In this document: one piece after another, positions 182 to 55,425 of the stretch | How positions within the stretch are numbered: position 1 is the stretch's first letter | Layout: each line of letters begins with the position of its first letter | NCBI GenBank assembly: GCA_051530055.1 | Contig: CM121341.1 | Coordinates: 6,612,784-6,676,783 of the forward strand | Origin: Neoechinorhynchus agilis | Lineage: Eukaryota > Animalia > Acanthocephala | DNA length: 64,000 bases | Direction of reading: 5' to 3' | The notes under the pieces: generated by a model | What the model saw: only the letters and a program-made list of their open reading frames with translations | Told to the model about the DNA's origin: nothing | Databases searched by the model: none | Position numbers and translations under genes: made by a program

Positions 182-3100
182 CTAAACATCGCATGTCCTG
201 CTGGGGCGGTCATCTGCACCCTCGCCACCACCACCGCCACCACCAGTACTCGTCGTCGTATTTACATCACCGACGAGAGCAGTGTTCTTGGTGATTTTCG
301 CAAGAAACGTGAATGCTCGTTCTACGAACTGGCTCACGTTGATTCGTCGTCCATTGAGATTGTTATCGTTTCGAATTCGTTCAACGGCACGTCTTAGATT
401 GCGTTCAATGAGTGCTTCCTTACCGGCGTAATATGTGATCCAATTTCTTGGTGTTAACGTGGACACTTCCATCAACAAGCTCACGATTATGATGGCACGT
501 TGATTGTTCATACCGTACGGAAGCCAGTCGACTACGTCCTCTAGTAAGCCACGGACCAACCTAGAACCTGGTTCGTCATCGTCATCGTCATCGTCCGCCG
601 GGTTTCCACCAGCAGTTCCTCTAAGAACAACTCGGAACCGATCTTCCTTAAGATCGTCTTCGGTCGAAAGACACGATCTTATTAGACAAAGAGAAGGTAT
701 CGCCACAAAGGGATCAATCGTGATTTCGGTGATTCTTTTGTGAGGAAAAACATCAATTAAAGAATAGAGTTCGTTAAAGACGATACCGACGACACGACAG
801 CTCGCCTTTATGTTCTTGTAACAGATGAACTTAACGTAAATGGAGGTGCCTTCATGAACAGCGACATCAGGATGAAGAAGAAGCCTTAGAATCGAGGTTG
901 ACTCCATTATCGTTTCTACACTAATCGGGAAATTGCGCTCTATAAGCTCGTAATCGATTGGACTAATCACGTATCCGATCCCGTCACCTTCGACTTTGTA
1001 CGGATTATCTATGCCGTGATTCGGGTACCGTGGACACCTCACGAGAAACAAAATCATCGATATCAGAGGTACGATGTTTCGAATCGAAGGACGAATGATG
1101 TCACCGAGATTTTCTCGGTCCGGCTCACTCAAAGTCCACGTTGGATCGCAACTAAGCAAAAGATCCACGTCCGGTGCGAAAACGGCTCTTGCAAGACGCT
1201 GTAGCAGAGATATACGTAGGAGTCCTTTGATTGTTTTTGGACCACGATTTCGTAACTTTTCAAAAATATCGATGACCTGTTGAGCATGGTGAGTTTCTTT
1301 AGGGACGAATAGCCTCGACATGATGTTGATGAGGCACTGAATGACATTACAAGCCAACACGAGGCTTTCTTCATTGTTCGATACGGCCATTTGACGAACG
1401 AGCAAAGCTTCGATGATTCTCGAGAAGCGACACCGGAAAGGTCGATAAAAGCGAACTAAAGTTTGGTAGAGCACTTGGAATTGGCATACTTGAGTTAGGA
1501 ATGCTGTTCGTGCAGAGAACGAGTGGACCGTGAGTGCTAGAATTCCATCGAGGATCTCGAGGCACGAATGTCGTATGCATTTTGGAATCGAAGTCTTTGG
1601 TTCTTCGAAATCGACTCGTTCGTTATTCACAACTAGAACACTTCCTTCAATTAAAGGCATTAGAGCGTCAGTTGCGGTGAGTGTTCGTAGAAGACATTGC
1701 TGATCGCGGCTCGGATCATCTTCAGCGCTCTCAAGTACGTGAGTATCGAGTGAAACTGAACTTGACGTGTGGCGTTTCATTAGGTGTGCAACGAACGCAT
1801 AGTAATCCGACCGTCCATGGACCTGATTTTCTAAAATCCGGATATTGGTCGAATGAATGTGCCTGTACACGTTCTCGGGAATCCGTGCTTCCGTCATATG
1901 GCAACGACGATCAAGTGGAATCAGATCTCGAATGGGGTTCGCCTGCTCCTTTCGGGTCCATTCACGTTCATAAAAGAGCATATAAGCACTCGATGGATCT
2001 CCATTTACGCCGTAACAATACTTTTCAAGGACCTTTTCTATCCCTTCAACTTGATAAACTTCATTGTCGTCGAATTTGTACCATTTTCCTTGTTCGCCAC
2101 ACACAGTCCCATCGTTCAATATAAACGAATAATAGTGGCCGTGTGCGAGTCCGCCCGTGTGTATCACGACTCCTTTAAGTTCATACTCAAAGTCCCGACT
2201 TTTCTCTTCGGCTTCTTGAATGGCTTCTTTACACATATAAGGAAGCATTGAAAGATGTTTTGGAAACTCAAACCGATTATTGTACTTGTGAGCGTCCATT
2301 CCTACGCCTGTGCCCAATCCAATACCACCATTGTCGATAAACCGTTTGAGCTGAAAGCCAAGTATCTGCCCACATCGTCTAAATTTTGTCCTCATCACAG
2401 CTTCCACCTTCTTCCGACAATGCTCACATTCGTATGCGTTGAGACCTTCCATTAACTCACCGCCAGTGTACTGCTCAAGACTCTCTTTTAAATCTTTAGC
2501 ATTCACAACGTCTACACTCACGAAACAAAACTCCTCGGGACGAACACTGCGCCTTCTACAAACAGTGCATTCTGTGACGGTCTCAAACGCTCCGCTCAAG
2601 ATCCGACTGAACACTGGCGGAAGTTTGTGTGTCGTAAATGCCTTGTCGACAGTGTCAACAAGCATCTGAAGAAACTCTACAGCGTCATGCTGTTCGTAAG
2701 GGTTAATCTCTTGACCAAAGAACTTAAATGCACTCAGAAACTCACGGGGCGAGTAGACGCTACTGAGAGATTCCATCAAGTAGGCGAACGTGAGTTGAAG
2801 ACATTGAAACGTTTCGAGCGGTTGATCGTCCGGATTGCGGTTAGTTGGTGACGAAGGAGCAGCCGATGCGAAGCAGGTAACGACAGTCGTGTCTTCGTCG
2901 TCTTCTTCATCCAGATTTACGGTCAGCGACGACTCCGAACATGCCGAATGGGTTTCGTCAGTAGTGCCATCGTCAACTTCGTTCACGGAACACAAATCAA
3001 TGCCTTCGTTCGCTTCACCTGAAGACGAACCGTCTCTACCCGTTTGACTGAGACAATTACTTAATTGAAATGGCATTTTGAGAATAGGAGGCGGTGTGGG

Positions 3101-6100
3101 AAGGTCAGTTGTGAGGACAATATCGCGAATTGTGCGGTTCATGAACATTTGCTGAAGAACCGCATTAGCATAGCATGTAGCTCCCGCATTTCTAAGACCT
3201 ACAAAATGACCTTGTTTCCTTGCCTTGTACTCATTGAGCGTAGAAGCGGGTGAATGAATCGAAAGTGGCAGATTCACAGATTCAACGGTTTCTGAACACC
3301 GTACACACTGACGCCGATTGTTTAGACCGTGTCGATGAAGAGATGCTCGAAAAATCATAAGATGTTCATCGATTCGACACAGTTCAACTGCAGCACTATA
3401 GGCTGCACATCTAGCCTCAAACGAAGTACACAAACATTCGTCAGTGAGCAGAGGGAAAGAGCTCTCTTCCACTGGTCGTCCGCATATACAACATCGTCTG
3501 TATATCCGACTATTACGGGTATGGAGGCATTTCTCGTGAATAAATAAAAGAAAGGTAGTCAAAGAGCCCAAAAACTCGTCGGATTGGTGTTTGAGGATAG
3601 CGGCACAGATATCAAAATGGAACGCGATACTGGCTTGACTAACGTCTTTTTCGTCGGCCATCTTCTGAATTGCTTGAATTTCACTCATTGTCAATTGGGG
3701 ACCGACTTCGCGCATGATATCCACTAAATCAGGCTGAGTACATTCCATAAGTTCCGCGAACACATTGTAGCCGTCTTGGAGACTAGGGCACCGGATGTTT
3801 CGCTGTAGAAGGTCGATAAGCATACGAAGAATGTGACTGGTGCCATTGTGATCAGAATAGGACAAAAACGAGTTCATGAGAGCAAACGCGAGTTCACCGG
3901 CAGCCTTACGTACAAGTGGACATTCGCATTTGAACAAAAGGGTATCGAAAAATTCGTAGATTCTCTGGTCATCCGATAGCCAGACTTGGTAAGTTTCTTT
4001 TACTTGAGGATTATATTGAGCGAGGAATAGCGAGTGAAGAAGGTAGATCATTTCCTGTGCAATCTCATAGCATAACGTAGTGACCACGGATGCTCGGACT
4101 CGTTCCTTTTGCGCATTTTGTTCAATCGCCTTCACGTCTGCGAGAAGACGTGCTTTCTTTTGAAGAGTTTCTACCATATTACGGCCGTGTTCTCCAAGAA
4201 GTAGACTTGGTAAACGTTTTGCACTATGTTTCTCGAGGATTCCACGATGAACTTGCTTTAGAAGATCTCTTCGTTCCATGTGAGCTGGTTTTTCTCGAAC
4301 AGCTCGACTCATTGCTATGAGCGAAACGAGTTGGTGGATCAACGTAACAGTGACCATTGCACCTTGAAGATGCACTCGTGTGTCTTTGAGAGCTTCGTAA
4401 CATATTGAATCTTCGTCGAGAAGAGTAAGTATAAAATCAGTACCACCTCGTTCATAGAATCGATGCGCCAACTCAACGTTTTCTTCATCGGATGTACTAT
4501 AAACGTTCAGGAATTGGCCTAATATCTGTAGACGGTATAGAGTCATTGGCGGCATGGGCTCTGGGCTGAAGAATGATTCAATCAAACAAGCGTCTTCTTT
4601 CTCACGCCCACTCAGTTGAGTCACCATCTTCTTTACTTCTTGCTGAATATCTTTTGACGGAGAGCATCGTAACAGTATTTGCTGGATCATAAACGAGAAC
4701 TCAACGTCCTCCACCGACGCGGATAATTCAATGAGACGCTTGTATGCGTTTGTCCTCTGCGTCAAAAATACCGATGGAATTATACGATCATCGATGTGAT
4801 CATCAATCGTCAAATCCATATCACGGACTTCATCGTCATACGTTAACGTAATGGCAAGATCACGCGTAAGGCATACCAACTGTCGATCTTCGATGTCTCT
4901 ACTGATTTTCCGATCGCCCATTCGAAACAATGGAACCATTGGAAACGGAAGATTTAAGACTTGTTCGATTTCGCGTTTCATATCATTCACAGTGTTCCTT
5001 TGATGAAACACGTACGTTCGATTCTCTGGCCTTTTCTCGACTTCTTCACAATCACGCGAACAGCAGTACTTTTCCAGTGTTAGTGTAACAAACTTCGAGT
5101 ATAGAGCATTCGCCAACGACTCACAATGGCATCCGAAGAATTTGTCGCATGACAATACATACTCAAACAACGTGGACGATATTCTTCGCAACGCCTTAAC
5201 ATCCGATCGGTTCTGTTCTATCATAGCCATCGATTGGGCAACTAAATTGTACTGATTTAGGCTCAATTTTCGATCATCGTTTAAATCTAGAATTGAACAC
5301 TGTGTGGCGTCTAAAATCGGCTCGGATGTGTACACTTTCACTAATTCGTCCCGTAACCAATTAGCGCATTTCTCGTCTTCACACTCACTAACAACTTTCC
5401 ATATAAACCGACGACCCTTGAAATCACTTGAAAGCACAGATTTGATTCGTTGTTCCATGAGGATTGACGGATTATGAATGTCATTGGCATCTATTGTACC
5501 GAAAGCGTGACTGCAAAAAAGTGCCCACATGGCACGAATGCACGAAAGTTTAGTCCGGCGTGGATCCATCTCGGCGACTATAAGCTCGTACACGAAGCCG
5601 AATACGCCTGTGAACGCGTCACATGACCGTTGAAGGCTCACGATTTTGGAGAAAAAGTCGAACATGATCTCCGCATCGTCTTCTTCAATACCTCGATTTA
5701 CCAAACACTTCCACAGACATTCTGCGTCTGATATGTTCACCTTTATTGCACTGGTTTTGTGAAAAATGTACATCAACTCGCCCCAATAAAAAAAAGTATT
5801 GAAAAATTGTGTTAAAACCCGCCCGCCCATTGGGAGCAAGTGATATATGTCAAAAGGATAAGACGTTGTTCAACTTGCTCACGATGAGTGTATCCGTCAT
5901 TAGTGGCTCGTTGATACTTAGCATCTTCCATATAAGCAGCAAGATTACGAAGAACGATTTCTACGATGCAGTAGTCATGATGAAGACGCCTAATAACGGC
6001 GTTTCTGCTCAATGAATCGACCATTCGGGTGGTCTGATACCTGTGTTCATCAGAGTCCGTGCTACTGTGACAAAGGTCGATGATTGAGCAGATCAATTTA

Positions 6101-7794
6101 ATGGCGACAATGCTTTCTGGTGCGTTTGAACGTAGAACTTCAACGAAAAGTTGAAGGAATTCCGTTTTGATAAAAGGTCTATTAAGGTCACCGCAGTAAA
6201 TTCCACTTGATCGAGGTAACACATTTCCCACTCTGAGCAAAACCACTTCGCTCACCCGTTCAAAGGTTGACACCAATAGATCACATGAACTTGCACTAAG
6301 GTTCTGAGTGTCGGTTATTTGAGAATGAACCAGTTCCCAAATGAAAGTAAGAATCCTTCTGGTTCTAAGGTTTTCTGTGTCGATTTCATTCATCTTCATC
6401 AGTAGACGGCACACTTCCCTTTGAGCACTACTAGTTCGTGCATCCCATAAAGTTTTAAGAATAAAGAACAAATGTGTCAAGAGTTGATCATCGCATGTAC
6501 TAATCACACCTACGACCATTTCTCGGGCATTTTTCGCCACGGCGGCCTGTCGCCCATATTGAAAACTCCATATATAGTCGAGATCATCATTGGATAGAAG
6601 ACCGGCCCTGGTTAAACAACTGAGGATGTTATCCATGTGGATCTGAAAGGCCGCTTTATGTATGGCGTCTCGCATTATGAGATCAAGAATCCGTTCTCGT
6701 TTCCACCATTCCATGAGACGAGCAATCCGAGGAACACTTGGCGCCCCAGTGTTTTCAATCGATTGTCCCATCAAACGACTGAGATCTTCAAAGGATTGTT
6801 GTTTGAACACATACCGATCAAGACGAAGCATCCCAAGAACAACATCTAGCATTCGATCTTCCATTTCAGTTCTTAGATCTTCCCTATTGATGATTACGCG
6901 TTCGATTAGACAGAGAGCTTTATCGATTAGACGAAAATAGTCTTTTGGTCCGACATTCGACTTTCCTCCACCAGGTTCAGAGCTCCCGTTTGCTTGTTTA
7001 GTCAGATATTGGAACGTGTAACGGACCATTGGGATCAGATAGTCGTCCACTGCTTCTGGGCTCAAGAACGGAAAAGGTTGCCGGAATATGCATAGTACAG
7101 AATCGATCAGCGAGCACTGCATTGGTTTTTCGCTCGATGAAAGCAATGAAAATTTTAGCCGAAGTTTTTCTAGACCGCCAAGATGGCCAAAATAGTTAAG
7201 AAAATCGATTAGAGTTCCACAAGTGAACGGAGAGTCTTCATTGACTACACAAGGACAAGCTATTTGAACTTGATCTTCTGCAGGTTCGAATACACTCAGT
7301 TCTGTTTTGTTCTGTTGATGGAAGTATGCAAACGGAGAAAACAGTCGTTGAAAGATACGAGCAGTGAGGTCACAGTTTTCTTCGAGCCTGAGGATACCGT
7401 ATTCGATAAGTCGATTACCGATAATTTTCACCAATTCATTGCAAGTGTCGTTCAGAATAGAACCAGAGAATTGACGAAACGCGTTATCGACGAACCTAAC
7501 TACGGGGCCATGATAACATCGGACGAACAGGTCATTGAACCGTTCATCTCCACGACGTGTAAATCGAATTATAGTAGATAGACATGAGTTTAGAGCTCGG
7601 AGGTTCACCTCGGACATCAAACAGCTATCGTCACTACACAGAATGACATCAAAGTCAGAGACGGAATAGTCATCAACGTGACTTTGACCACCATTACTCC
7701 CAGACTCAGTCGTAGCGCCGTCTGAAGCGTTTTGGCGATTCTCGTCAACAATTGTCAGATCTTTTTCCATTCCACAAGACCTTACGAACAACAA
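182..7794 (-). CDS. USP9X/USP24 (fat facets)-family ubiquitin C-terminal hydrolase, about 2500 aa, in two long ORFs (5812-7794 and 182-5839) with one frame break
   Basis: Cys box GLRNAGATCYANAVLQQMF, QHDAVEFL, His box YELKGVVIHTGGLAHGHYYSFI, WYKFDDNEV and SAYMLFYER. The segment YTHREQVEQRL...DAECLWKCL resembles USP9X YSHVQEVQERL...QAKQIWKCL. First ATG is about 7770. Confidence 0.85.
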
Positions 7795-8501: not shown

Positions 8502-9581
8502 AATTATTTGTCGATAGGAGAGAAAAATGAAATTAAGAATTGGATATTTCGATCCACTATCTCGGATCTTCTATATCCGAGTTCGCAATCACTGAAAAAG
8601 ATCCGAGATAGTGAATCGAAATATCCAATTGTTAATTTCATTTTTCTCTCCTATCAACAAATAAAAATGAATTTGATATTTCGATCCACTATCTCGGATC
8701 TTCTATATCCGAGTTCGCAATCGCTGAAGAAGATCCGAGATAGTGAATCGAAATATCCAATTGTTAATTTCATTTTTCTCTCCTATCAACAAATAAAAAT
8801 GAATTTGATATTTCGATCCACTATCTCGGATCTTCTATATCCGAGTTCGCAATCGCTGAAGAAGATCCGAGATAGTGAATCGAAATATCCAATTGTTAAT
8901 TTCATTTTCTCCTATCGACAAATAAAAATGAATTTGATATTTCGATCCACTATCTCGGATCTTCTATATCCGAGTTCGCAATCGCTGAAGAATCCGAGAT
9001 AGTGAATCGAAATATCCAATTGTTAATTTCATTTTCTCTCCTATCACAAATAAAAATGAATTTGATATTGATCCACTATCTCGGATCTTCTATATCCGAG
9101 TTCGCAATCGCTGAAGAAGATCCGAGATAGTGAATCGAAATATCCAATTGTTAATTTCATTTTTCTCTCCTATCAACAAATAAAAATGAATTTGATATTT
9201 CGATCCACTATCTCGGATCTTCTATATCCGAGTTCGCAATCGCTGAAGAAGATCCGAGATAGTGAATCGAAATATCCAATTGTTAATTTCATTTTTCTCT
9301 CCTATCAACAAATAAAAATGAATTTGATATTTCGATCCACTATCTCGGATCTTCTATATCCGAGTTCGCAATCGCTGAAGAAGATCCGAGATAGTGAATC
9401 GAAATATCCAATTGTTAATTTCATTTTTCTCTCCTATCGACAAATAAAAATGAATTTGATATTTCGATCCACTATCTCGGATCTTCTATATCCGAGTTCG
9501 CAATCACTGAAAAAGATCCGAGATAGTGGATCGAAATATCAAATTGTTAATTTCATTTTTCTCTCCTATCGACAAATAATT
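8502..9581. repeat. Tandem array of about 8 x 132-bp internally palindromic units, bounded by long terminal inverted repeats (foldback/MITE-like)
   Basis: Each unit has arms gatatttcgatccactatctcggatctt / aagatccgagatagtgaatcgaaatatc. The array ends aattatttgtcgataggagagaaaaatgaaattaa... and ...ttaatttcatttttctctcctatcgacaaataatt are reverse complements. Confidence 0.9.
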
Positions 9582-10855: not shown

Positions 10856-11665
10856 ATGCGATCATTAACACGAGCCGCAACGGTTCGCCTTTTTATCAGA
10901 GTTCTATCGCAAATTCTGAGCGGAATGCATCCTTTGTGTACTTATAAATTAACTCCTATTTACGAAACCACCGGGGTACTGTTCTTTCGTGTTCTCGATG
11001 TGCGTCATATTCATCAGATCAAGAAGTTTTTACCGATATTTCGGCTCAACTCAGAGCATTTATCAAGATTGTTTACGAAGGAAAGCTTACTAGAAATTTT
11101 TCTTCGGAAACAATCTTGATCGCTGGATTGAGCCGAAATATCGATTTAATAAATTTACATAGTGTTGTGGCAACTACACAACAATCATGAGCAGTTTCAT
11201 TTTTTCAACAGATTTTTTACCGTCAACGTGCTTTTTCTCAAAATATCTCAATAAAATATGCGTTTGATCCGGTGGGATTTACAACGTGTCCAACTCAATC
11301 AAAAGAAACTTCTTCAAAATGATTTGGAGATGTTCTCGGATAATAGAATGACCAACGAGGCTTGTTTGGAGAATATTTTTTATTCGGACGCGGGTCAAAA
11401 ATTAATACATCTTCACCTTGTCTCAATGTTCAAAGAAAATCACTCCATACATTCTTTTAAACAAAGACTTTCATCCCTCTCTGAACCTCACACTGAGACA
11501 GATAAAAGGTTAAAGTTACTTAAATCTTTTCGGTTCATCTCAACAATAATAATAGTCGTTCTGATATTCAGAATGCCTATGAAGTACAGAGATTTGTTTA
11601 TGGGTAAATCAGAGAAAGTTCGTCTGAACGCATTCGACATTACTAACAAAAGCTCTCGAGAATAA
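10856..11665 (+). CDS. Probable unassigned protein-coding gene (two consecutive ORFs)
   Basis: ORFs of 87 and 135 aa separated by an intron-sized gap; no family recognised. Confidence 0.3.
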
Positions 11666-11791: not shown

Positions 11792-11917
11792 TATTCTCAA
11801 GGCCAATTGTAACACACTCGAGTTTTATTGAACTCTTCATTGCGAATTTTCAAGGTCTCAGCCTCCTTTGAAGAGTTCGATAAAACTCGAGTGTGTTACA
11901 ATTCGCCATTGAGAATA
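11792..11917. repeat. About 126-nt hairpin (inverted repeat, MITE-like)
   Basis: Arms tattctcaaggccaattgtaacacactcgagttttattgaactcttca / tgaagagttcgataaaactcgagtgtgttacaattcgccattgagaata, with a 29-nt loop. Confidence 0.85.
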
Positions 11918-13820: not shown

Positions 13821-16165
13821 ATGGAAATACTTAGAACCGCTTACAAATCCGTTTGTTCAATCGATGGTGATGAGCGGAGACTAATTGCGTCAACGAATCA
13901 AGTAATCACAAGAGAGGATGAATTCAATTTGTTTACATGCGGTCTTTACAAGCAAATTGGGCCGAATTCTTTTCTTCATGAAAACGGCAAGGATATCGAT
14001 GAACTTCTTATGTTAGACGAGGAAAAGACAGTGAAGCATCAAAAACCAAAAATGAACTATCTTTATGGCGGACACTGTTCAGCCGATCGCTTTGTTCACA
14101 GTTGTATCAGAGAGCAATTGAACAAACGTTTGTTGTACTCCATGTATGCAAATGGTAGGAAATGGATTTGCCGGAACGTATTTGAGCTTGAGGACGCCAA
14201 TCAGGTATTGTTTCCCATTCAAGTGGAGATGGAAAAAATCAGGGATTTGGTCCGATATCTTTTAAAGAGTTTGTTTTGTTTTAAAAGTAAAGGAGAACTA
14301 AAACGAATGTGCCAGACCTTTTATCCTTGAGAAAATGACTGACGAGTGGTCGTAGTGTTTTTAGAACCTCGCCAAGCATCTTCTTTATTTCTTTCAAAAA
14401 AATCAAGCAATCTCCTTATTGCTCGGGAAAAACAAGTCTTTTTTCTCTCACTCTAACGTCTGTAGGTGTCTAATGAGACTGCTCGGTTCCTTGTTTTACA
14501 TAAGTGAATCCACGAGTAACTCTTGTGCTCTCCAATATTTCTTATTCGTTCGACATCTGACGAGATATCTTGCCCGTCGGCGTGTGGATGTCTTAAGCAA
14601 TTATGTCCGAGTATGGGATGAAAACGCCCTGATGGTCAACGTGTACCGAGCTAGATTCATCCCTGATCAAGATGGAGATTTCACTGTTGTCGTTAGTGAG
14701 TCCGGTCGTCAAAGCAAGCAAACAAGTTTTCATATTCAATGTTTAAGAATACTTCTCGGTGAATTCTGTACTGCGAGGATGGACACGATAGACGAAGTAG
14801 CCCTCGGATTAAAACATTCTTCGCTCTGTGAAAATGACGGCGGAATTCGTTTAAATAACGGAATGAGCCTTTTGGTCACGGACCTTGAGAACTACTTTGA
14901 TAGCATCAAGATCGACGTTTTGCTCAAAACTAATACGATCACACGTCTTCTCGAGTATTTAAGAATTCACGTTCAAGTCGTGCGCTTTGATGAATATAAC
15001 GAGTACACGTTGACCAGTAGTCGCAGGATCAGCGTAAAGAAAAGATTGTTTTGGTCCCAAAGTGCACAGATAAAAATGCGGCGAAATACAGTGTACGCTT
15101 TCAAGCGTTCAATTTGGGTCGAAAGCAAGCAGCTGGTTAAGTTTTTTATATCCTGGCTTACTCGATACACGATAAAATTGCATGGAAAATTCTTTGGAAA
15201 GAAATTGATAAGATAAGACTCATTGAAAACGAACTTATTTTATATGATTCTTATCAAAGGACTTCCAAGAGGATCTTGTCTATCGCCCATTCTTTGCCAT
15301 GCTTATCTTAACCAGCTGGATGATGTCCGAGGTGAGAGGTACTTGAATCGGATCCAATGAAAACTCCATTGAACTTGGACAATTTTTTCTAAAGCATAGG
15401 AACGTTTTGAGAATGGGGGAGGGAAGTGATTTTAACCTGTTTGACTAATTTAAGTACCTCTAATCTGAACTCAATATGATACCAAAATCTATCAACTTTA
15501 GAAATACCGATGACATACTGATCGTTTGTATGACGTCCGACATTCCACTTGTAGAATGCGAATTGAACAAAGTTCTATCTAATCTCGGATTACGACAAAA
15601 TCCAAACAAAATGTATAGAATTGTCCAAGGTGAATGCTCCAAATGTGTTCCGTTCGGCAGTGGCTTGATTGTATTTAACCGAGCCGTTTTGAGTTTCCGA
15701 TTTTACTCGCGAAATGATTGTTCAAATAAAAGTCAATACTATTTGCCAAATGAACGTCTAGAAGATAAAATGGAATTGCTCAGTAGTCGTATGCTGACTA
15801 AGTTAACCGCTCGACTGAAACAAGCTTTCCTCTCATGTGACGTGAACCCAGAATCAATCGTTCTTCTTAACATCGTAGAGATATTTAAGAGTTCGGCTCG
15901 TGACTTCAAAAATCTAACTAACAATTTGAAACTTAGCTTTGAACGATCGGAACAGCGATATGGCAGTTTGCTAATGAAATGCTGCCAAAAAGTTTGGAAA
16001 CACTTCACAATGCATAACAAGTCCGATATTATTTTTTCAAAATCGACAATTGAATACCATGGAATATGGGGCTACCTAAACGAATTTGAAGAATCACCTG
16101 GAAAGTATAAAAGGCTATTAAAGTGGACTAGGCGAATGTATGATTCCTTGAGTGCAGATTTGTAA
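13821..16165 (+). CDS. TERT: Divergent telomerase reverse transcriptase, multi-exon, possibly defective
   Basis: Motifs in the correct order: T motif LFYISESTSNSCALQYF, motif 1/2 RARFIPDQDGDFTVVV, A LLVTDLENYFDSI, B' GLPRGSCLSPILCHAYL, C RNTDDILIV, D LGLRQNPNK, E-like VPFGSGL, followed by a thumb/CTE-like region. Confidence 0.8.
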
Positions 16166-25639: not shown

Positions 25640-26900
25640 CAAATCGGAATTAATCGGATATACGATTTAAATGCAAACTTTATTTTGTCATTGCCTTGCA
25701 TCGGAAAAAATAAGATCAATGATCAATTTATTTGCAATCAAGTGCCGATTTCATATTCCTGGGGACTGTTAGATGAAAAAGGCTTAGTGATTGATTTATT
25801 GAAGAGCAAGTAAAGATTTGTTTTGAAGGACGATGATCGAAATCACGAATATTTAAGACGCAATTTACCTATGGTTACTGAATTTGGGCACGGAAATGTT
25901 TACAATAAAACCTACCTTTTATTTTTCACCTTCTTGAGTATAAGACGATGTGAAATTGAGTTCATTGAGTATCGAAAATCCGAATCTTACGAAATGTACT
26001 CGAATCTCTTTCATTGCAAATTGCAGTCATTTTACAAGGACTACGTTAAAATGATAATGGAAAAATGGAGAACCCATAATTCCGCGGACATTATGTCGGT
26101 TAATTATATGATCGTTAGCGGTTTTCATGAACCATTGGAAGCCATCTTTAAAGAAGTCAAGCATTTGTCCTACTCGTATTTTCCTCAGTTAAATTTCAAA
26201 GATCAAACTTTAGCGCTGAACTTTGTTAAGAAACGAGGAGTAATGAAATTGATAGAAAAAAAACGATGCGACGAAGCCAGAAAGTTGATAAATGAGAGAT
26301 GGGACAATCTCGTGGAACGGAACGATCAAGTCAAATGTTTTCTTTGTATTCAAGAATAGTTAGATATGATGACTGAGAATCACGATACCGTTAAGGCTTT
26401 GAAATACGTCGGTGAGAATATTGCTGGTCTCTTGTCCAATTACGAAGCGAGAAACAGATCGATATTAGAAGTTTTGTCGATGGTATCGATGAAGAAACCG
26501 TCGAAATCACCATTCGCTGCTTTGCTTGGTCCGAGAATGAGAAGTCGAACACCAAAGCAGATAAACTTCCTTCTTATGCAGGAAACCGAGCGATTAGCTA
26601 TCAAAGATTCAACTGGAGAAGATATCGAAGTTGCAACGATCGATGATGTCTGTCTAATCGATGCTTACAGGATATCGTTCTCTATGCTATCAATAATTGG
26701 ATCTTTGGAACGGGCACAAAGACACGTTCATGTCGACCGGGAAATTAATATTTATGAAGTGTTGCCAATATTTTTCCAAGGCAATATTCCTGTTCGGACG
26801 GCGAACGAAATTAAGGAAAGAAGGAATGATCATCGAGAATCCTATTTATGAAAGTAGTGACCTTTTTCTAGAATTTCTATTTTCTGGAAACAAATAAAGG
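25640..26900 (+). CDS. RanBP9/10-like (SPRY?)-LisH-CTLH-CRA protein of the GID/CTLH complex, with an internal TAG
   Basis: LisH-like IMSVNYMIVSGFHEPLEAIF, CTLH-like VMKLIEKKRCDEARKLINERWDNLVERN...FLCIQE*LDM, CRA-like LEVLSMVSMKKPSKSPFAALLGPRMRSRTPKQINFLL; exon boundaries uncertain. Confidence 0.6.
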
Positions 26901-28849: not shown

Positions 28850-31800
28850 GCAGCAGTAGGTGTTTGTATATTTGAGTCCGGACAGAGGTTCTGATTGAAG
28901 GAGTGGCGAGATTTAAAGCATTTTTCGATGACTTTTGAAAGAATGGATATTGCGCAGAATTATTCCGCAGAAATAGGATGATGACTTTAGCAGTTTTGAG
29001 CATGAGGGGATTAAGTGGGTCTATGACTTCGAGGATGATGCAGCGAAAAGCTCAGTTTGGGATTTCGGATCGACAAGACGAATTTTGAGGTACTTTTTTT
29101 GGGATGGGAAACTAAGGGGGTGTATCGGCGAGTTGAAGAAAGTTTCAGGTGTGGGCGTGAAAGATTGTGTGGTGACTGATGTGGAGCAGTGATTGTAATT
29201 TGAGCCAGGGCAGAGGTTCTGATTGATGGAGTCTAGAACTTGTTTTAATTCAATTGAAGACAAATTAGGGAAGGGATCCGGCTGGCGTATACCAAGAGAG
29301 TCGGCCCACCGCCATGTTGAATTGGAACCCGAACGAATTTTATAGGAAAGAAAGTTTTTGCGGGTGATAAGTATTTTGTTAATTAGAGCTATTTCTAAAC
29401 GGGGAAATCTGGAGGGCAGAGGTTCTGATTGATGGAGTCTAGAACTTGTTTTAATTCAGTGGAGGTCAAATTAGGGAAGGGATCCGGTTGGCGTAGACCA
29501 AGAGAGTCGGCCCGCCACCATGTTGAATTGCCACCCGAACGAATTTTAGAGGAAAGAAAGTTTTTGCGGGCGATAAGTATGTTGTTAATTAGAGCTATTT
29601 GTAAATGGGGAAAATCTGGAGGGCAGAGGTTCTGATTGATGGAGTCTAGAACTTGTTTTAATTCAATTGAAGACAAATTAGGGAAGGGATCCGGCTGGCG
29701 TAGACCAAGAGAGTCGGCCCACCACCATGTTGAATTGGCACCCGAACGAATTTTAGAGGAAAGAAAGTTTTTGCGGGCGATAAGTATTTTGTTAATTAGA
29801 GCTATTTGTAAATGGGGAAATCTGGAGGGCAGAGGTTCTGATTGATGGAGTCTAGAACTTGTTTTAATTCAGTGGAGGTCAAATTAGGGAAGGGATCCGG
29901 TTGGCGTAGACCAAGAGAGTCGGCCCGCCACCATGTTGAATTGGCACCCGAACGAATTTTAGAGGAAAGAAAGTTTTTGCGGGCGATAAGTATGTTGTTA
30001 ATTAGAGCTATTTGTAAATGGGGAAAATCTGGAGGGCAGAGGTTCTGATTGATGGAGTCTAGAACTTGTTTTAATTCAGTGGAGGTCAAATTAGGGAAGG
30101 GATCCGGCTGGCGTAGACCAAGAGAGTCGGCCCGCCACCATGTTGAATTGGCACCCGAACGAATTTTAGAGGAAAGAAAGTTTTTGCGGGCGATAAGTAT
30201 GTTGTTAATTAGAGCTATTTGTAAATGGGGAAAATCTGGAGGGCAGAGGTTCTGATTGATGGAGTCTAGAACTTGTTTTAATTCAATTGAAGACAAATTA
30301 GGGAAGGGATCCGGCTGGCGTAGACCAAGAGAGTCGGCCCACCACCATGTTGAATTGGCACCCGAACGAATTTTAGAGGAAAGAAAGTTTTTGCGGGCGA
30401 TAAGTATTTTGTTAATTAGAGCTATTTGTAAACGGGGAAATCTGGAGGGCAGAGGTTCTGATTGATGGAGTCTAGAACTTGTTTTAATTCAGTGGAGGTC
30501 AAATTAGGGAAGGGATCCGGCTGGCGTAGACGCCCGCCACCATGTTGAATTGGCACCCGAACGAATTTTAGAGGAAAGAAAGTTTTTGCGGGCGATAAGT
30601 ATTTTGTTAATTAGAGCTATTTCTAAACGGGGAAATCTGGAGGAAGAGGTTCTGATTGATGGAGTCTAGAACTTGTTTTAATTCAGTGGAGGTCAAATTA
30701 GGGAAGGGATCCGGCTGGCGTAGACGCCCGCCACCATGTTGAATTGGCACCCGAACGAATTTTAGAGGAAAGAAAGTTTTTGCGGGCGATAAGTATGTTG
30801 TTAATTAGAGCTATTTGTAAATGGGGAAAATCTGGAGGGCAGAGGTTCTGATTGATGGAGTCTAGAACTTGTTTTAATTCAGTGGAGGTCAAATTAGGGA
30901 AGGGATCCGGCTGGCGTAGACGCCCGCCACCATGTTGAATTGGCACCCGAACGAATTTTAGAGGAAAGAAAGTTTTTGCGGGCGATAAGTATGTTGTTAA
31001 TTAGAGCTATTTGTAAATGGGGAAAATCTGGAGAGTTATTTTGATGGGCCTTAGATGCTTGCTTTTGAAGAAGTTTCAAAATGGTGGAGTTATTCATGGT
31101 TGTTCCCGGTTAGAGATTAATGAATTTCTTGGGAATTGCCGAAATTAGGGAATTTTATATGATTGAGGTTAGGGAGGACATTGCCAAGGAAGGTTCGTTT
31201 GTGTTGCTGAAGTGGAATATGCGAATATTAGAGTTGAACAATTTTATAAAATTTTAAATGTGATGATCACGTTTATCCCTGACAAGTAAAAGGGGAGATT
31301 TAAAACGCTGAGGTGGGGTCGAGGGAGTAATGAGGGCAGAAGAGTAGTCAGAGTTCGGTGGATTTAGAGACGGATGAGTAGACGTCGATATTTTTTTGAA
31401 CACTGTCTTGATGAGCGTCAAGACGAGTTAGAAAGTCAATAAGTTGACGTCACTCTGCGAAGGGTGAAAAAGGAAATAGCTTATTGAGGTCTTCTGCAAT
31501 TAGGAAATGTTGTGAATTTGTGCCGTTTATGAGCTCCATCATGGAATCAAGTTGGCGCAAAGAGAACCCAGGGAGAGAGGCAACGATTGTGATTTTTACT
31601 AATGATATTTCTTGGAGGAGATGAGAAGTGGACTGCGATGAATTCTAGATCGGGGTTTTGTAGAGAGCTTGATAGATACTGAAAAGTTACCGACTGTCCA
31701 GACTTCAAAAATATAAAAGCTCTTGAAAAAAACCAATTTCGCAATAGATATAGTTCGACGGTGGGGAAGGGAATTTTGGATTTCGTTAAACCGGAGGGGG

Positions 31801-40202: not shown

Positions 40203-41986
40203 CAGCCGTAATTGTTACTCACGTTTACTTTTATAAAAAAAAGACGAATATTCGACGGCAGCAAATGCTGATTTCAAGTATCCGTCGGTTAAAATTGGCA
40301 AAGTATTATAATCTTAGCTTTCACTTTTTGCATTTACTTCGTTCGCTAAAAATTTTACGAATTTTAATGTTAAATTTCATAACGTTTTCGCGATTATTTT
40401 GAATGATTGTACTATTCATCCTGTGAGCATTTCAGACCTGAATAAATTTGCACGCTAAATGCTAATTTTTTATAGGGAATTATAATAATTGATTTATTTG
40501 ATAATTTTCGGCCTAAGCGTAGGTCTCTTGTAAGTTCTTAAATATGTGATTTCGTCTTAAGAACTTACAAGCAATGGACTGATGAAGAAGATGTACGCGA
40601 AGACCGAAAATTATCAAATAAGAATAAATCAATTATTATAATTCGCTATCAAAAAGTAAATGATGAACATCTTTACAATGAATGCTAATTCTTTATGTAT
40701 TTTTTTTCGAAAAAAAGGTTTCACATACATTTACGCCAGTTTTGTTAAAGCCGTGAAAGATTAAAAGGTTAATCAAATGATATCTGCTAAGGTTAGTTTC
40801 CTTTTTCGGGTCGTTATCGGTTAGATAAATATCCAACTGCTGACAATTTTAGTTCATTTTAATATTTTTGAATCATGTGCTATCAATTTTATTTTACAAC
40901 TGTTGTAATCTTTTCAATTTGTACTAGGATAGAAGTTCGAATTTTGATATAATCAATTTTTATCATTGTAATAAAATGGCGGTATGTGAGGTACCGGGTA
41001 ACAAACCGATGATGAACCCGACTATGTTCGAAAATTTATTTAATAAAAAATTATTCACCGGGTGAAGACATAAATAATGCTTCTTTTTATTATAATTCAT
41101 TGCTTCGCAGTTATATTGTGGTGATATAGAGATTAATTATTTATTATTTCTTTTTCACAATATTTCGTCGGATATATCAATGTATTTCTGTGAATTTCAA
41201 AGAACGCCATCTCAGAGAATTGGAATAGGGCGTTGGTATTTAGAACTCAGACGATAATTTATTTCCACAAATGTTTTGAGTTAAAAGACTTAAAAATTAT
41301 AAGCATCTCTGAGTGTAAAGCAAATCGAACTTTATTCTTATTAATCATAACAAAGTAATGTTGTTGATGTGAAGTGATCTTTGAAAATCAACATTAGCGT
41401 TGAATATCTACGAAAAATCGCCGTGTCCAATACACAATTTGATCGTTTCAAAAATCAGTGCGACGTTTCAACGATTCATCTTCAGGGTTTTGTATTTGTT
41501 TTCCTTACTAGAATGAGCGGGTAAGAGCTGCCTTCAAAGCCAAGAAAAAGTCTGGTTTTATTGGACTTTGATTGGCTACAAAATAAAAGTTCGTTATTTA
41601 AAACAAGCAATAAAGCAAAAGTACTGTAAATTTATTATAAATTTTATAATCAGTGCATTTCGGCAACTTTTGCAGTGTTGAATGCAATCGCTTACAGAGT
41701 AAATTTTTTGCGAAATAATACTTGATTTTAATGCTCATAAATCGTTCTGTTGATTTTATTTCAAACATCTTAGTGCATGTCATTTTAAGGACTGAATTAT
41801 ACTTTTCATCTATGTTTCTTGTTCATTAAGAAGTCGATGTGTCACGTTAGACTTGCTCAGTCGGTGGATTTACGGGGTTGTGAAGAATCATGCGGGCTAT
41901 GATTAATCGGTCTTAGTTATAAAAGAAAGTTTTCACAGACGACTTAGTGAAAAATGGCTCGAACTAAAATAACCAGTAGCCAATTT

Positions 41987-44005
41987 ATGGCCATTCCAAC
42001 ACCTGCTAAGGAAGAGGCTCAGGCATTCCTGGACTACAATAATAAATCACCGACTCCATACCATGGTTAGATCGTTTATCTTTAGCTGCCAGAGCTAATA
42101 AAATTTCTCTATAGCCGTACAAAATGCAAAATCGATGTTACTCGATAATGGATTTACTGAATTGACAATTGAAAGTGATTGGAATTTGTCTAAGAAAGGA
42201 GGGGTAATTAGTGTAATCGAATGCTTTTTAAAGTGAATTTGGGGTGCTTAGTATTTTATAACAAAAGGAGATACGACAATAATCGCTTTTCTGGTCGGCG
42301 GACAGACTACCAATGGTAGTCCAGTTGCGTTAGTCGCTACTCATACGGATAGTCCTTCACTCAAGGTGACTCCGAATTGACATGGATGCACCGTTGTTTA
42401 ATTGGAAATTGTAGGTCAAACCTTGTTCTAAGAGAGGATTCGGTAAATATTCTCAAGTTGGAGTGACCTTGTATGGAGGCGGAACGTGGTACACGTGGTT
42501 CGACCGTGAGCTCAAACTCGCTGGAAAAGTCTGGGTTACGTTGGCAGTATCCATTCGAAGCGGATCAAAACAACTAGATGTGGAAACCACGGAGACATAT
42601 CCTTGTCTTTTAAATCAAAGCTCGTTTAGAAGTCACTTTATTTTCGCAATAAAACGGCGATAACCACGTAGAAATGCGTAGCTGTGATTTTTTAGATGTT
42701 TTCAAATCACCATTCTTCAAAATATTGAGTTGTAATCGGGCCGATTTTTTTCACAATTTAACTCCAAAAATTAAAAATCTCATTTTTTTTAAAGAATGGA
42801 TTCTGTCGACATAAGAGACCTGGTGGACAAGTAGAAAGTCAACTGATCAACATTGAAAAACCTCTAATGTACATTCCAAACCTCGCAATTCACTATATTC
42901 GGTCGGATACATTTACTCCCGATCTAGAAGTTAACGTGTAAGTACGTTTAATTTAACTCACGAAGATAAAAAAATAATTTCTATAGTCTTCCAATAATTG
43001 CATTGGCTGAAAGCGACAGTATCAAATCCACAGAAAGCACACATAATCCGTTTTTGTTGAAAGTCGTTAGTGACGCGACTCAAACAGCTCCTGAGGATAT
43101 AGTTGAGATGGATCTCTGGGTTGTCGACTATAATCCGGCTAGATTGGTGGGCGTAAACGAAGATTTTATCGTTGGAATGAGATTCGATAACCAAATTAGT
43201 ACATTTGCTGCGCTAAAGGTATTTAGTGGCAATAAATTATACCGGTTCTCAAAAATTACAGGCGCTGATAAATGCAAAATCATCCAGTTTCTTATCAGAA
43301 TCCAAGGCTTTTCATGTGGTAGTTTGCTTTAATAATGAAGAGGTTAGCGATACTTGAAGTATTTATGATTGGAGTTTTGTGAATTTTTGTTGAAAGATTG
43401 GAAATAACACTACTGAAGGAAGTCGATCGGATTTCACTCCTCAAGTAATTCAAAAGATGGTCGGAGGAAAGGAATATTTAGATCAATCAATAGACCAATC
43501 ATTTGCGATATCTGCAGATGTTGTCCATGCTGTTCATCCAAACTATTCGTCAGTGCTACATCTTCCTTGTCCAGCTAGCTTTATCTTTTAAAAATAGAAA
43601 TTACCACGAAGAGAACCATAGGCCGGACTTGGACCTCGGTCCAGTTATCAAATACAACGCTTCAATGAAATACACCACAACTGGTTTTAGCGCAATGATC
43701 GCAAGAGAAGTCGGACGAATGGCTGGTATTAACCTGCAGAGTTTCATTATCAGGAACGACTCGCTGAGCGGAAGCACTCTTGGACCTGATCTAGCGGCCT
43801 TGCTGGGTATTGATTCCGTTGATATGGGAACCTCAATGCTGGCAATGCATTCCATTCGAGAGTTCGCAGGGAGTCTCTCAATCTCACAAGCAAGAGACTT
43901 TTTTGAAGTACTAGTTCCAGAGAATCACAATAATCATTTTTTCTACCTAATCTTGTTTAGGCCTTTTTCCAATATTACGAAAAGGTTCGAGATTCATTGG
44001 AGTGA
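41987..44005 (+). CDS. DNPEP: Aspartyl aminopeptidase (M18 family), spliced, apparently intact
   Basis: SPTPYHAV, VATHTDSPSLK|VKP, YGGGTWYTWFDRELKLAG, IPNLAIH, RFDNQISTF, ISADVVHAVHPNY, GPVIKYNASMKYTT, GSTLGP, DMGTSMLAMHSIRE. Confidence 0.95.
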
Positions 44006-53623: not shown

Positions 53624-55425
53624 ATGGGTTCAGATGTGAATGTACTGACCTTCCGCATTAAACGATTAAGACCCTTTAAAATCTTTGACAAATACTATTT
53701 GTTTGTATTTAAATATTATAGATTTTGTGTGTTGGATGGAGACTCAAGTGGATCCTTTAACTGCTCAAATCCTTCTCATGTCGTACTATCCAATTGGTTC
53801 ATACATTATTCGACCATCTTCATCTGGGCATGAGAAAACTATTTCAATTTTGCGAGACCGCAAGGAAGTAGTTAACGTCCGTCTGTCTACTGATAAGCCA
53901 GAAGATGAACTGCTAAGGACAGCACAGGATCTTCTGGGTGACGAGCATCGTGTAAATCGCGTAGAACTTCTTCATGCATTACCTTTGTATATTCACGTGA
54001 ACCACAGTAATGATCTACTACGCAGATGCAAACCAAGTTCATTTTTAGTCCGAGCTCCCACTCAATCCTCACAGTGTGGTCTTGTTCTTTGTGTCAGCAG
54101 TTCGGAGACGAAAAATCAAATTCACAGATTTCGACTTTTGCATTGTTATGGGAACGGGAAGTGTAAGGGTTGGTCATTGCAGTCCGCAGACCCTACGACG
54201 CCAAAGTTCCAAGCAATTGATGATCTCATTGCTTATTATCAGAAAGTTTCAGTAGCTTCTACAAGCGGCGAGGTTTGTTGTTTAAAGGAACCGGTCAATC
54301 GAACATGGGTGTCAAAGTTATTGCTTCAACGAAGGATCAAAGAAATTGAAAGGCATGCTATGACAATCAATTCAGTCGATTATGCCTACTATGAGCTTGA
54401 ATTTGAGGTTGGTGTTTATCTTGTCCTAAAATTGGTTATTTATCCAAAGCCTCCTTGTACTGTAGTAAATTGCTTTAAATCCAATCAAAATGCAGGAAAT
54501 AGGTACCACTTTAATTTTTTACAAGGATCGCAATAATGTATTGTTTGTGTCAAGATACACACGGATCGGCATTTAAAATCACTTATTCGTTTCATTTCTA
54601 TTTCATGTTTTTCGTTCACATATAGAATCTTGAACTCTGTGCAGATCGCCATTGTATCTCGGAAACAATAGGCCACAGACATCCCGAGCTTAACCGATGC
54701 CGACTCTTGGTACCCTTTGATTTCAACATTGTTAGATGTGAGTCATACATTAACGCGAGTAATATGTAAGGAATGAGTATTTGATTGGTGCTTTAAATTG
54801 CCACGTTTAGAGAATTAAAAGATAAACGGGTGATTTTAGCACAAGCCCCGATTCCCTCGACCGTAAAGCGATTTCTTCGTATGGTTCATGATGAGAACGT
54901 TCGGATGATCATTTGCCTAATAAAAGTAAATGACAATCTCGTCAGATTTTCTATGTTTGTCAAATACTTTTAATAACAGAAAGTCGATCGCATAACCGCA
55001 TTCTAACCGAGCCTTATTGGTCGGACGACTTGGTGCAGTCCCACGAAATCGTCTTGCCCGAGCACGGTGATATTGTGATGAGGAAACTGATTTTGAACGG
55101 TCGTGATGTGATCCTTTATCAGATCACGTCGTGGCAGCAACATTCAATACCGAATAACGATGAGTCCGTTAGATTTTTGTTGAATAAGTTCACCGAACAC
55201 CTTAGAGACAATGAAGAACTCAAACCTGTACTTGTTCATAGCAGTTTCGGAGTGGGAAGAGCAGGTACTTTTCTTGTACTTGCCAAAATGATACTTGAAG
55301 CAGAGCGTGAATATGTAAGCATTTTTGAAACTGTTCTTGATTTGAGAATGCAACGGCGTTTCTTGGTGGATAATGCCAAACAGTACCTTTACGTACTTAA
55401 GTATGCGAATCGGTATATAAAATAA
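53624..55425 (+). CDS. Tandem-SH2 protein tyrosine phosphatase (SHP2/corkscrew-like architecture), predicted catalytically inactive
   Basis: SH2 motifs GSYIIRPS and SSFLVRAP...FQAIDDLIAYY; PTP motifs NRCRLLVPFD, YINAS, ILAQAP, PVLVHSSFGVGRAGTF and QRRFLVDNAKQY. Confidence 0.85.

Follow-up and report, generated by a model that had tools for sequence, protein, structure and literature searches.

An extremely divergent telomerase reverse transcriptase gene with a stop-containing hairpin insert in the acanthocephalan Neoechinorhynchus agilis

Telomerase reverse transcriptases (TERTs) devoid of the TEN domain are known from Tribolium castaneum (596 aa, PDB 3DU5/3KYL) and from nematodes (TRT-1). 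Their RNA-binding domain, fingers, palm and thumb are arranged as a ring; the motifs follow one another as T, 1, 2, A, B', C, D, E, the fingers domain contains a long insertion, and both the aspartate triad and the lysine of motif D are present. The motif order, the insertion, the triad and the lysine recur, probably together with the ring architecture, in a gene on the plus strand (positions 13821-16165) of a 64,000-nucleotide (nt) stretch of the genome of Neoechinorhynchus agilis (Acanthocephala; GCA_051530055.1, CM121341.1), which is the window analysed here (record position = window position + 6,612,783). The locus is the TERT orthologue of N. agilis, extremely divergent, without a TEN domain and with a small predicted product of about 655 aa. 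It is unlike the Tribolium and nematode TERTs in its far greater divergence, in the presence of Asp, Phe and Arg at the site for deoxynucleoside triphosphates (dNTPs), in a B'-C linker shorter by nine residues and in a reading frame interrupted by a TAA codon.

For the interruption, the closest described cases are introns lacking a GT donor. In some animals with compact genomes, GA-AG outnumbers the other minor splice classes, whereas in most animals it is rare (PMC7072748); according to a report as cited in PMC4202315, it is frequent among newly gained introns of Oikopleura. The GA-AG introns of Oikopleura dioica and Eurytemora affinis (PMC7072748) resemble the candidate intron described below in being short, in residing in a compact genome, in having a GA donor followed by A and an AG acceptor, and in being missed by standard gene finders. 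They make up several percent of the introns of these species, whereas no second case was seen among approximately 16 introns of the N. agilis window. Amoebophrya has non-canonical introns whose ends form hairpins, which carry short direct repeats and lack GT-AG (PMC7789003). These introns, or introner elements, have inverted repeats of 8-20 nt at their ends and direct repeats of 3-5 nt at their boundaries, and the N. agilis insert is alike in these respects. Amoebophrya, however, is a dinoflagellate with element families of thousands of copies, whereas the insert is a single copy in the window and is situated in an animal gene.

The affiliation with TERT was assessed with an alignment of 16 chordate TERTs, used as a profile in both hhalign and hidden Markov model (HMM) tests. 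The conceptual protein matched this profile in hhalign with an E-value of 6.7e-6 (9e-8 for the best splice variant), and the alignment was collinear throughout the RNA-binding domain, T motif, motifs 1, 2 and A, fingers insertion, motifs B', C, D and E, and thumb. The score of 55.8 compares with an average of 18.5 and a maximum of 24.0 for 60 shuffled sequences and with 20.2 for the reversed sequence. Among 1174 six-frame open reading frames (ORFs) of the window searched with the TERT HMM, three pieces of this gene occupied ranks 1, 2 and 3 (the ORF of exon 2 on top, that of exon 3 second), and no further TERT-like locus was found in the 64 kb. In a phmmer search with human TERT (residues 532-1132, checked to be identical to PDB 7QXA), the T motif/motif 1 region and B' were aligned, the E-value being 0.0011 for a single target. 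The T motif, LLGSLFYISESTSNSCALQYF, pairs with LLRSFFYxTESxxQKNxLxFY at the top hhalign confidence and is also part of the phmmer alignment to human TERT; its stretch LFYISES is located at 14491-14511 (+; hhalign, high confidence). Motif A Asp and B' Gly are separated by 109 residues without the insert and by 126 with it, versus 118 in human TERT.

Searches of general databases were less informative. In Pfam, RVT_1 scored below threshold (24.5 bits versus a cut-off of 29.6), TERT_C was faint (E 0.05-0.07) and Telomerase_RBD was not detected in the conceptual protein. Among 1.84 billion representative proteins, phmmer returned only the two GenBank models of the locus itself and one spurious repetitive bacterial protein, and a word-indexed protein search with E-values up to 10 recovered these two models alone. 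No match was found in PDB by phmmer, and none in Rfam for either the TERT locus or the whole window. A single-sequence AlphaFold prediction was uninformative, with a predicted local distance difference test (pLDDT) score of 32.5. The structure model built with the chordate alignment was poor as a whole (46.8) and confident in the thumb (71-94; residues 521-657), and its 12 best Foldseek PDB matches were all TERTs (human TERT thumb 5UGW, TM 0.64), the model and its matches being partly circular through that alignment.

In GenBank, the locus is split into two adjacent genes, both for nameless, hypothetical proteins. The first model, P0001 (ACOME3_001521; 13821-15216, +), has 412 aa and ends at the TAA, and the second, P0002 (15244-16165, +), has 252 aa and begins at ATG 15244. 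Spliced together, the two form a coding sequence of 2,025 nt with exactly one internal stop, TAA at 15214-15216. Exon 1 (13821-14308, +; within P0001) starts with ATG 13821 and encodes the N-terminal part of the RNA-binding domain without any TEN domain; its segment GHCSADRFVHSCIREQL (14070-14120) pairs in hhalign with the QVYxFVRxCLxxVVP region of chordate TERTs at low confidence. Intron 1 (14309-14465, +; 157 nt, AT/GTGCCA ... TCTGTAG/G) is canonical GT-AG, and its splicing reproduces P0001 exactly. A first-pass annotation of this DNA had seen no phase-matched GT-AG solution near 14310-14365. This turned out to be mistaken: GT 14309 and AG 14464-14465 join KRM/CLMRLL in frame (...KRM/CLMRLLGSLFYISES), and the solution had been missed because the ORF from 14365 was assumed to be coding. 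The possibility that NLAKHLLYFF represents an extra coding stretch within intron 1 was rejected, the gain in hhalign score being only about 1 and two non-canonical introns being needed.

Exon 2 (14466-15196, +) contains, by hhalign against the 16 chordate TERTs, the T motif, motifs 1, 2 and A, the fingers-domain insertion and the sequence IKLHGKFF (15172-15195). It is followed by the AT-rich hairpin insert (15197-15259, +) with the sole in-frame stop, and then by exon 3 (15260-15338, +) with motif B', (K)GLPRGSCLSPILCHAYL, identified by profile alignment. Intron 3 (15339-15501, +; 163 nt, AG/GTACTT ... CTTTAG/A) is again canonical. Its ordinary GT-AG boundaries (GT 15339, AG 15500-15501) are those of P0002, which splicing reproduces, and give ...DDVRGE-R-NTDDILIV at the B'-C junction. 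Exon 4 (15502-16165, +) harbours motifs C, D and E and the C-terminal thumb, and terminates with the stop codon at 16163-16165.

Motifs 1 and 2 (YRARFIPDQDGDFTVVV, 14644-14694, +) were placed by hhalign with high confidence, and motif A (LLVTDLENYFDSI, 14869-14907, +), motif C (RNTDDILIV, +), motif D (LGLRQNPNK, +; Lys at 15608-15610) and motif E (VPFGSGLIV, 15647-15673, +) by profile alignment. The catalytic aspartates reported by the first-pass annotation are indeed in place, as GAC 14881-14883 in motif A and as Asp-Asp at 15509-15514 in motif C. MAFFT offers another register, with TSD as motif C; Asp-Asp is favoured by hhalign and by the pattern RxTDDhLhh. Both substitutions described earlier were confirmed as well, at columns of high alignment confidence: motif 1 reads RFIPD, with Asp (GAT, 14665-14667) opposite the conserved Lys of the profile alignment (RFIPK in TERTs), and motif B' reads KGLPRGS, with Arg (AGA, 15268-15270) opposite the conserved Gln (GIPQGS in TERTs). 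Moreover, the Arg of motif 2 is also replaced: RPI is changed to FTV (DGDFTVV versus xGLRPIV in TERTs), with Phe encoded by TTC at 14680-14682.

The Lys of motif 1, the Arg of motif 2 and the Gln of B' are K626, R631 and Q833 in human TERT; these residues make contact with the incoming nucleotide across reverse transcriptases and hold the dNTP in all telomerases studied. All three dNTP-binding residues are replaced (Asp, Phe and Arg), while motif A Asp, motif C Asp-Asp and motif D Lys are retained; three such replacements with intact catalytic aspartates are unusual for any reverse transcriptase. The GAT and TTC codons are at least two base changes away from any Lys or Arg codon, and the K>D and R>F changes are therefore evolutionary and not read errors. 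The replacement of K, R and Q bears on the activity of the enzyme, not on the ancestry of the gene.

The TAA at 15214-15216 (CM121341.1 6,627,997-9) lies, as was claimed before, between IKLHGKFF and KGLPRGS, and the segment 15181-15277 contains neither GT nor GC, in line with the former statement that no donor is available. Relative to the chordate TERT profile, the insert comprises 17 residues by hhalign, GKKLIR-stop-DSLKTNLFYM (51 nt), and without these 51 nt the distance from the aromatic pair to G(I/L)P is four residues, as is usual in TERTs. The GC content of the insert (24%) is below that of 99.4% of the TERT exon windows of the same size. Codon-usage log-odds, trained on the other genes of the window, gave a score of -3.6 for its 16 sense codons, versus +1.9 +/- 2.4 for exons and -1.3 +/- 2.3 for introns. 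This is lower than in all, or 97%, of the TERT exon windows and inside the range of introns, and because of this score the insert appears not to evolve as coding sequence. Downstream of the TAA, 261 codons are fully open (chance about 1e-8; 0/20000 shuffles) and retain motifs B' to E and the thumb.

The insert is bounded by perfect inverted repeats of 9 nt, TTGATAAGA (15205-15213) and TCTTATCAA (15249-15257). AAA is found to the left of the repeats (15202-15204), and the right AAA (15256-15258) shares its first two bases with the end of the right arm; the inner arms of the hairpin, 18 nt long, are 83% complementary. This end pattern occurs once in the window versus 0.03 times expected by chance, such repeats bracket only 2% of the window, and no second copy of the hairpin element was found in it. 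The RNA is predicted to fold modestly better than shuffled sequences, into a hairpin of about 85 nt (minimum free energy -22.8 kcal/mol, z = -2.2) with the TAA inside a 10-bp stem. Two other palindromic structures were observed in the vicinity: an isolated hairpin similar to a miniature inverted-repeat transposable element (MITE) at 11801-11907, intergenic and upstream of the TERT gene, with 39-nt arms of 95% complementarity, and a smaller hairpin at 11062-11120.

All GT, GC and AT donors around the TAA were enumerated in combination with all AG and AC acceptors. Canonical removal of the stop could be rejected, as the conserved IKLHGKFF, the conserved GLPRGS or both would be lost with any in-frame pair. 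A U12-type intron, defined by a ATATCCTT donor and a TCCTTAAC branch site 10-15 nt before an in-phase 3' site, was rejected likewise: for the donor ATATCCTG at 15148-15155, the AC partners at 15219/15234 have no branch motif, and the conserved FFISWLTRYTIKLHGKFF would be lost. The occurrence of ATATCCTG in exon 2, a 7/8 match to the U12-type donor consensus, is probably due to chance. Two GA-AG candidates are in phase. The first, at 15197-15259 (CM121341.1:6,627,980-6,628,042; 63 nt, G/GAAAGA ... ATCAAAG/G), produces ...GKFF-GLPRGS, and the second, at 15212-15259 (48 nt, A/GATAAGA), produces ...GKKLI-R-LPRGS. Each of these donors is a single base off a GT donor, and the one at 15197 resembles G/GTAAGA. 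Common to both candidates are a CTTAT resembling a branch site, a 3' end rich in T and the acceptor AAAG/, similar to that of two nearby introns of the aspartyl aminopeptidase gene DNPEP, and their length is within the 45-70 nt typical of the introns resolved in the window.

Our preferred reading, to which we would assign a probability of about 0.4, is that the insert is a short, probably young intron with a non-canonical donor in a still functional TERT gene. A hairpin insertion may have given rise to a young intron lacking the GT donor, which would be removed with GA-AG boundaries at either 15197-15259 or 15212-15259, and the spliced mRNA would encode one full-length TERT. BRAKER/AUGUSTUS accepts GT-AG and GC-AG introns only and drops other intron hints, so that a GA-AG intron could never be annotated, even if supported by reads; blind to it, BRAKER would have ended the first gene at the TAA and started the second at ATG 15244. 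If the TAA were a true terminator, the damage would have to be very recent, as there is no second lesion in 2 kb, and the majority allele in the pool of worms sequenced. Splicing would need no such coincidence and would explain the insertion relative to other TERTs together with its composition, codon usage, length and stop. The TERT identity, the exon structure, the features of the insert, the phase of the candidate introns and the open frame downstream are shown, whereas the splicing of the insert and a working protein in spite of the K>D, R>F and Q>R changes are inferred.

Several observations weigh against this. The spacing between FF and GLP is off in both solutions, being 0 in the 63-nt one and 5, with a G>R change, in the 48-nt one, versus 4 in the consensus, and the 51-nt deletion that restores the spacing has no recognisable splice dinucleotides. 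The insert offers no GT donor. Donors in this genome are degenerate beyond GT, therefore the resemblance to GTAAGA is of little weight. The loss of the dNTP-binding K, R and Q would fit a relaxed constraint on the enzyme. Finally, approximately 16 other introns of the window, resolved by homology or reading frame, are all phase-matched GT-AG introns, none of which needs a non-GT donor: nine in DNPEP, two in a DENN gene, two in an SH2-phosphatase gene, one in a USP9X-like gene and two in TERT, mostly 45-70 nt and in a few cases up to about 260 nt long. Human DNPEP and USP9X sequences served as guides. With no second case among these introns, the window gives no sign of a general use of GA-AG by this genome, and pervasive non-canonical splicing of the Oikopleura/Fritillaria style was dismissed, the introns of the DNPEP, DENN, SH2-phosphatase and USP9X-like genes all being GT-AG. 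Nor does the split gene model count for much by itself, because BRAKER has also split the USP9X-like, DNPEP and SH2-phosphatase genes despite canonical introns joining their parts; these split models are plain annotation faults.

The first-pass annotation had left three options for the locus: a decaying TERT, a functional TERT with non-canonical introns, or an assembly artefact. The TERT identity was upheld; non-canonical introns are not needed at two of the three junctions, which are GT-AG, and two in-phase GA-AG solutions do exist at the TAA. A simple base-call artefact is unlikely.

The foremost rival explanation is a freshly broken gene, in which a small palindromic insertion, or the loss of the donor of an old intron by GT>GA, would make the transcript end at the TAA, with a null allele or very young pseudogene as a step of telomerase loss. 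Taken as a whole it is possible, if on the doubtful side, and the odds of a very recent disabling insertion come close to those of the non-canonical intron. The perfect terminal repeats and AAA flanks are reminiscent of a tiny foldback element or MITE, or of an insertion by templated repair, and both the rarity of the end pattern (1 in the window versus 0.03 expected) and the small fraction of the window bracketed in this manner (2%) are in favour of this explanation. So are the lack of any GT or GC donor, the replacement of all three dNTP-contacting residues and, from another acanthocephalan, the failure of telomere probes on Pomphorhynchus chromosomes, as summarised in PMC10592040. On the opposite side, the 2 kb of exon sequence are otherwise free of stops and frameshifts, so that the inactivation would be extremely recent, and a TERT null allele is not expected as the consensus of an assembly from pooled worms. 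No second copy of the element exists in the window, and the T motif, Asp triad and motif D Lys have all been kept.

Much less probable is an error of assembly or consensus, with the stop or the missing GT being a wrong base and the true gene either uninterrupted or containing a canonical intron. High-coverage Illumina reads and Oxford Nanopore (ONT) R9.4 reads were combined in a hybrid MaSuRCA assembly, the DNA being that of about 50 pooled worms and of single females, and annotation was by BRAKER with RNA-seq (PMC12690905); reads and RNA-seq data of the species (74 worms for the latter) are public. The mixture of pooled Illumina and ONT R9.4 reads would allow for such an error, and one T>A change suffices to convert G/GTAAGA to the observed G/GAAAGA. 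However, the consensus was built on super-reads of high-coverage Illumina data, with a k-mer completeness of 96% (PMC12690905), T/A transversions are atypical of long-read errors, and the codons behind K>D and R>F are at least two bases away from those for Lys and Arg. The entire 51-nt stretch looks non-coding and is missing from other TERTs; a plain base error is unlikely because this whole stretch, and not one codon, is anomalous.

We give even less credit to a real stop that is handled at translation, by readthrough, hairpin bypass or A-to-I editing, or to an enzyme made of two pieces. Recoding might profit from the position of the TAA in the 10-bp stem of the 85-nt hairpin. UAA followed by G is nevertheless a strong terminator, the sense codons of the insert look non-coding, and editing would have to change both A residues of UAA. 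As to a two-piece enzyme, the insert supplies the TAA and, 27 nt further on, an in-frame ATG, exactly as in the two-gene model of GenBank; the split would place the RNA-binding domain and motifs 1, 2 and A in the first ORF (412 aa) and motifs B', C, D and E and the thumb in the second (252 aa). Against it, no split TERT is known, reinitiation past an ORF of 412 codons is inefficient in eukaryotes, and no AG that could serve as a trans-splice acceptor occurs within 15217-15243. Hardly credible at all is that the gene encodes not TERT but the reverse transcriptase of a Penelope-like or other retroelement, domesticated or decayed. In favour of it, Penelope-like elements, which form the sister group to TERT, are abundant in acanthocephalans and account for 8.9% of the Pomphorhynchus laevis genome (PMC8557442), and Pfam gives just a sub-threshold RVT_1 without Telomerase_RBD. 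On the other side, the TERT profile aligns over the full length, T motif FYxSE and thumb included, the fingers insertion, short or absent in Penelope-like elements, is long, the A-to-B' distance (109-126 residues) is TERT-like, no GIY-YIG or other endonuclease domain (Pfam) and no repeat flanks are present, and this single such locus in the window has two spliceosomal introns.

The B'-C spacer had also been described as short, and with the canonical intron 3 it is nine residues shorter than in chordate TERTs; the strand before Asp-Asp is hydrophilic in this version. An alternative intron 3, from the stronger donor G/GTGAGA (GT 15332) to TG 15466-15467, adds ELNMIPKSINF and makes the alignment from B' to C gapless, with an hhalign score of 69.1 versus 63.3 for the canonical intron. 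Shuffled 11-residue extensions match the score of the alternative in 18% of trials, and what speaks for it is therefore length only. The GT-TG alternative, with its upstream extension of exon 4 (MIPKSINF), is unproven, and the canonical intron was kept.

Some of the neighbouring genes were inspected along with TERT. The USP9X/USP24-like gene (182-7794, -) is represented in GenBank by two genes, the halves of which are joined by a GT-AG intron at 5818..5751 (minus strand). DNPEP (41954-44005, +) likewise appears as two genes, joined by a GT-AG intron at about 42536-42794; the read-through SGSKQLDVE in this gene is similar to the beginning of the exon that follows, GGQVESQLINIE, and may point to an exon duplication. 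The SH2-domain tyrosine-phosphatase-like gene (53624-55425, +) is covered by two BRAKER models, from which two exons with canonical introns are omitted. Its catalytic loop VHSSFGVGRAG has the catalytic Cys changed to Ser, and the product is likely a pseudophosphatase; the loss of this Cys fits the generally extreme protein divergence of N. agilis, the genome of which holds only 47% of metazoan BUSCO genes (PMC12690905). Two tandem arrays were also noticed: eight 132-bp units at 8537-9579, 97% alike, each of them an inverted repeat with 35-nt arms, and nine 207-bp units at 29207-31033, 95% alike and with a very strong GC skew (+0.22 to +0.36). At 25814-26848 (+), ORFs of 181 and 163 codons share one frame with a single TAG between them, and a further ORF, upstream of these, is likewise a single stop codon away. 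These ORFs have neither a Pfam match nor a matching annotated product and may belong to an interrupted or decayed gene.

The genome paper of N. agilis makes no mention of telomeres or telomerase (PMC12690905). In Pomphorhynchus, telomere probes (TTAGGG and others) failed, which, according to the summary of Bombarova 2009 in PMC10592040, points to an undiscovered motif or another maintenance mechanism in Acanthocephala. In bdelloid rotifers, which are relatives within Syndermata, canonical telomere repeats and/or TERT were reportedly not found, and TERT has been lost in Diptera (PMC5405514). N. agilis may be an intermediate of such a loss; unlike in bdelloids and Diptera, its TERT gene is present and nearly intact, with the catalytic aspartates kept. 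It is rather improbable, in our estimation, that an acanthocephalan TERT with a rewired nucleotide pocket coexists with a hairpin introner-like element excised without a GT donor. If the pocket were rewired in this way, an unusual catalytic mode would be implied, or a TERT kept for a non-catalytic role in a lineage nearing a telomerase-free state like that reported for bdelloids. If the insert is spliced, it would document a GA-AG or hairpin intron for Syndermata and would caution that annotation of the BRAKER type fragments such genes; if it is not, the reference would record the loss of telomerase almost at its first step. In either case, an acanthocephalan still has a TERT gene, hidden as two 'hypothetical proteins', and the question of how its chromosomes are capped becomes testable.

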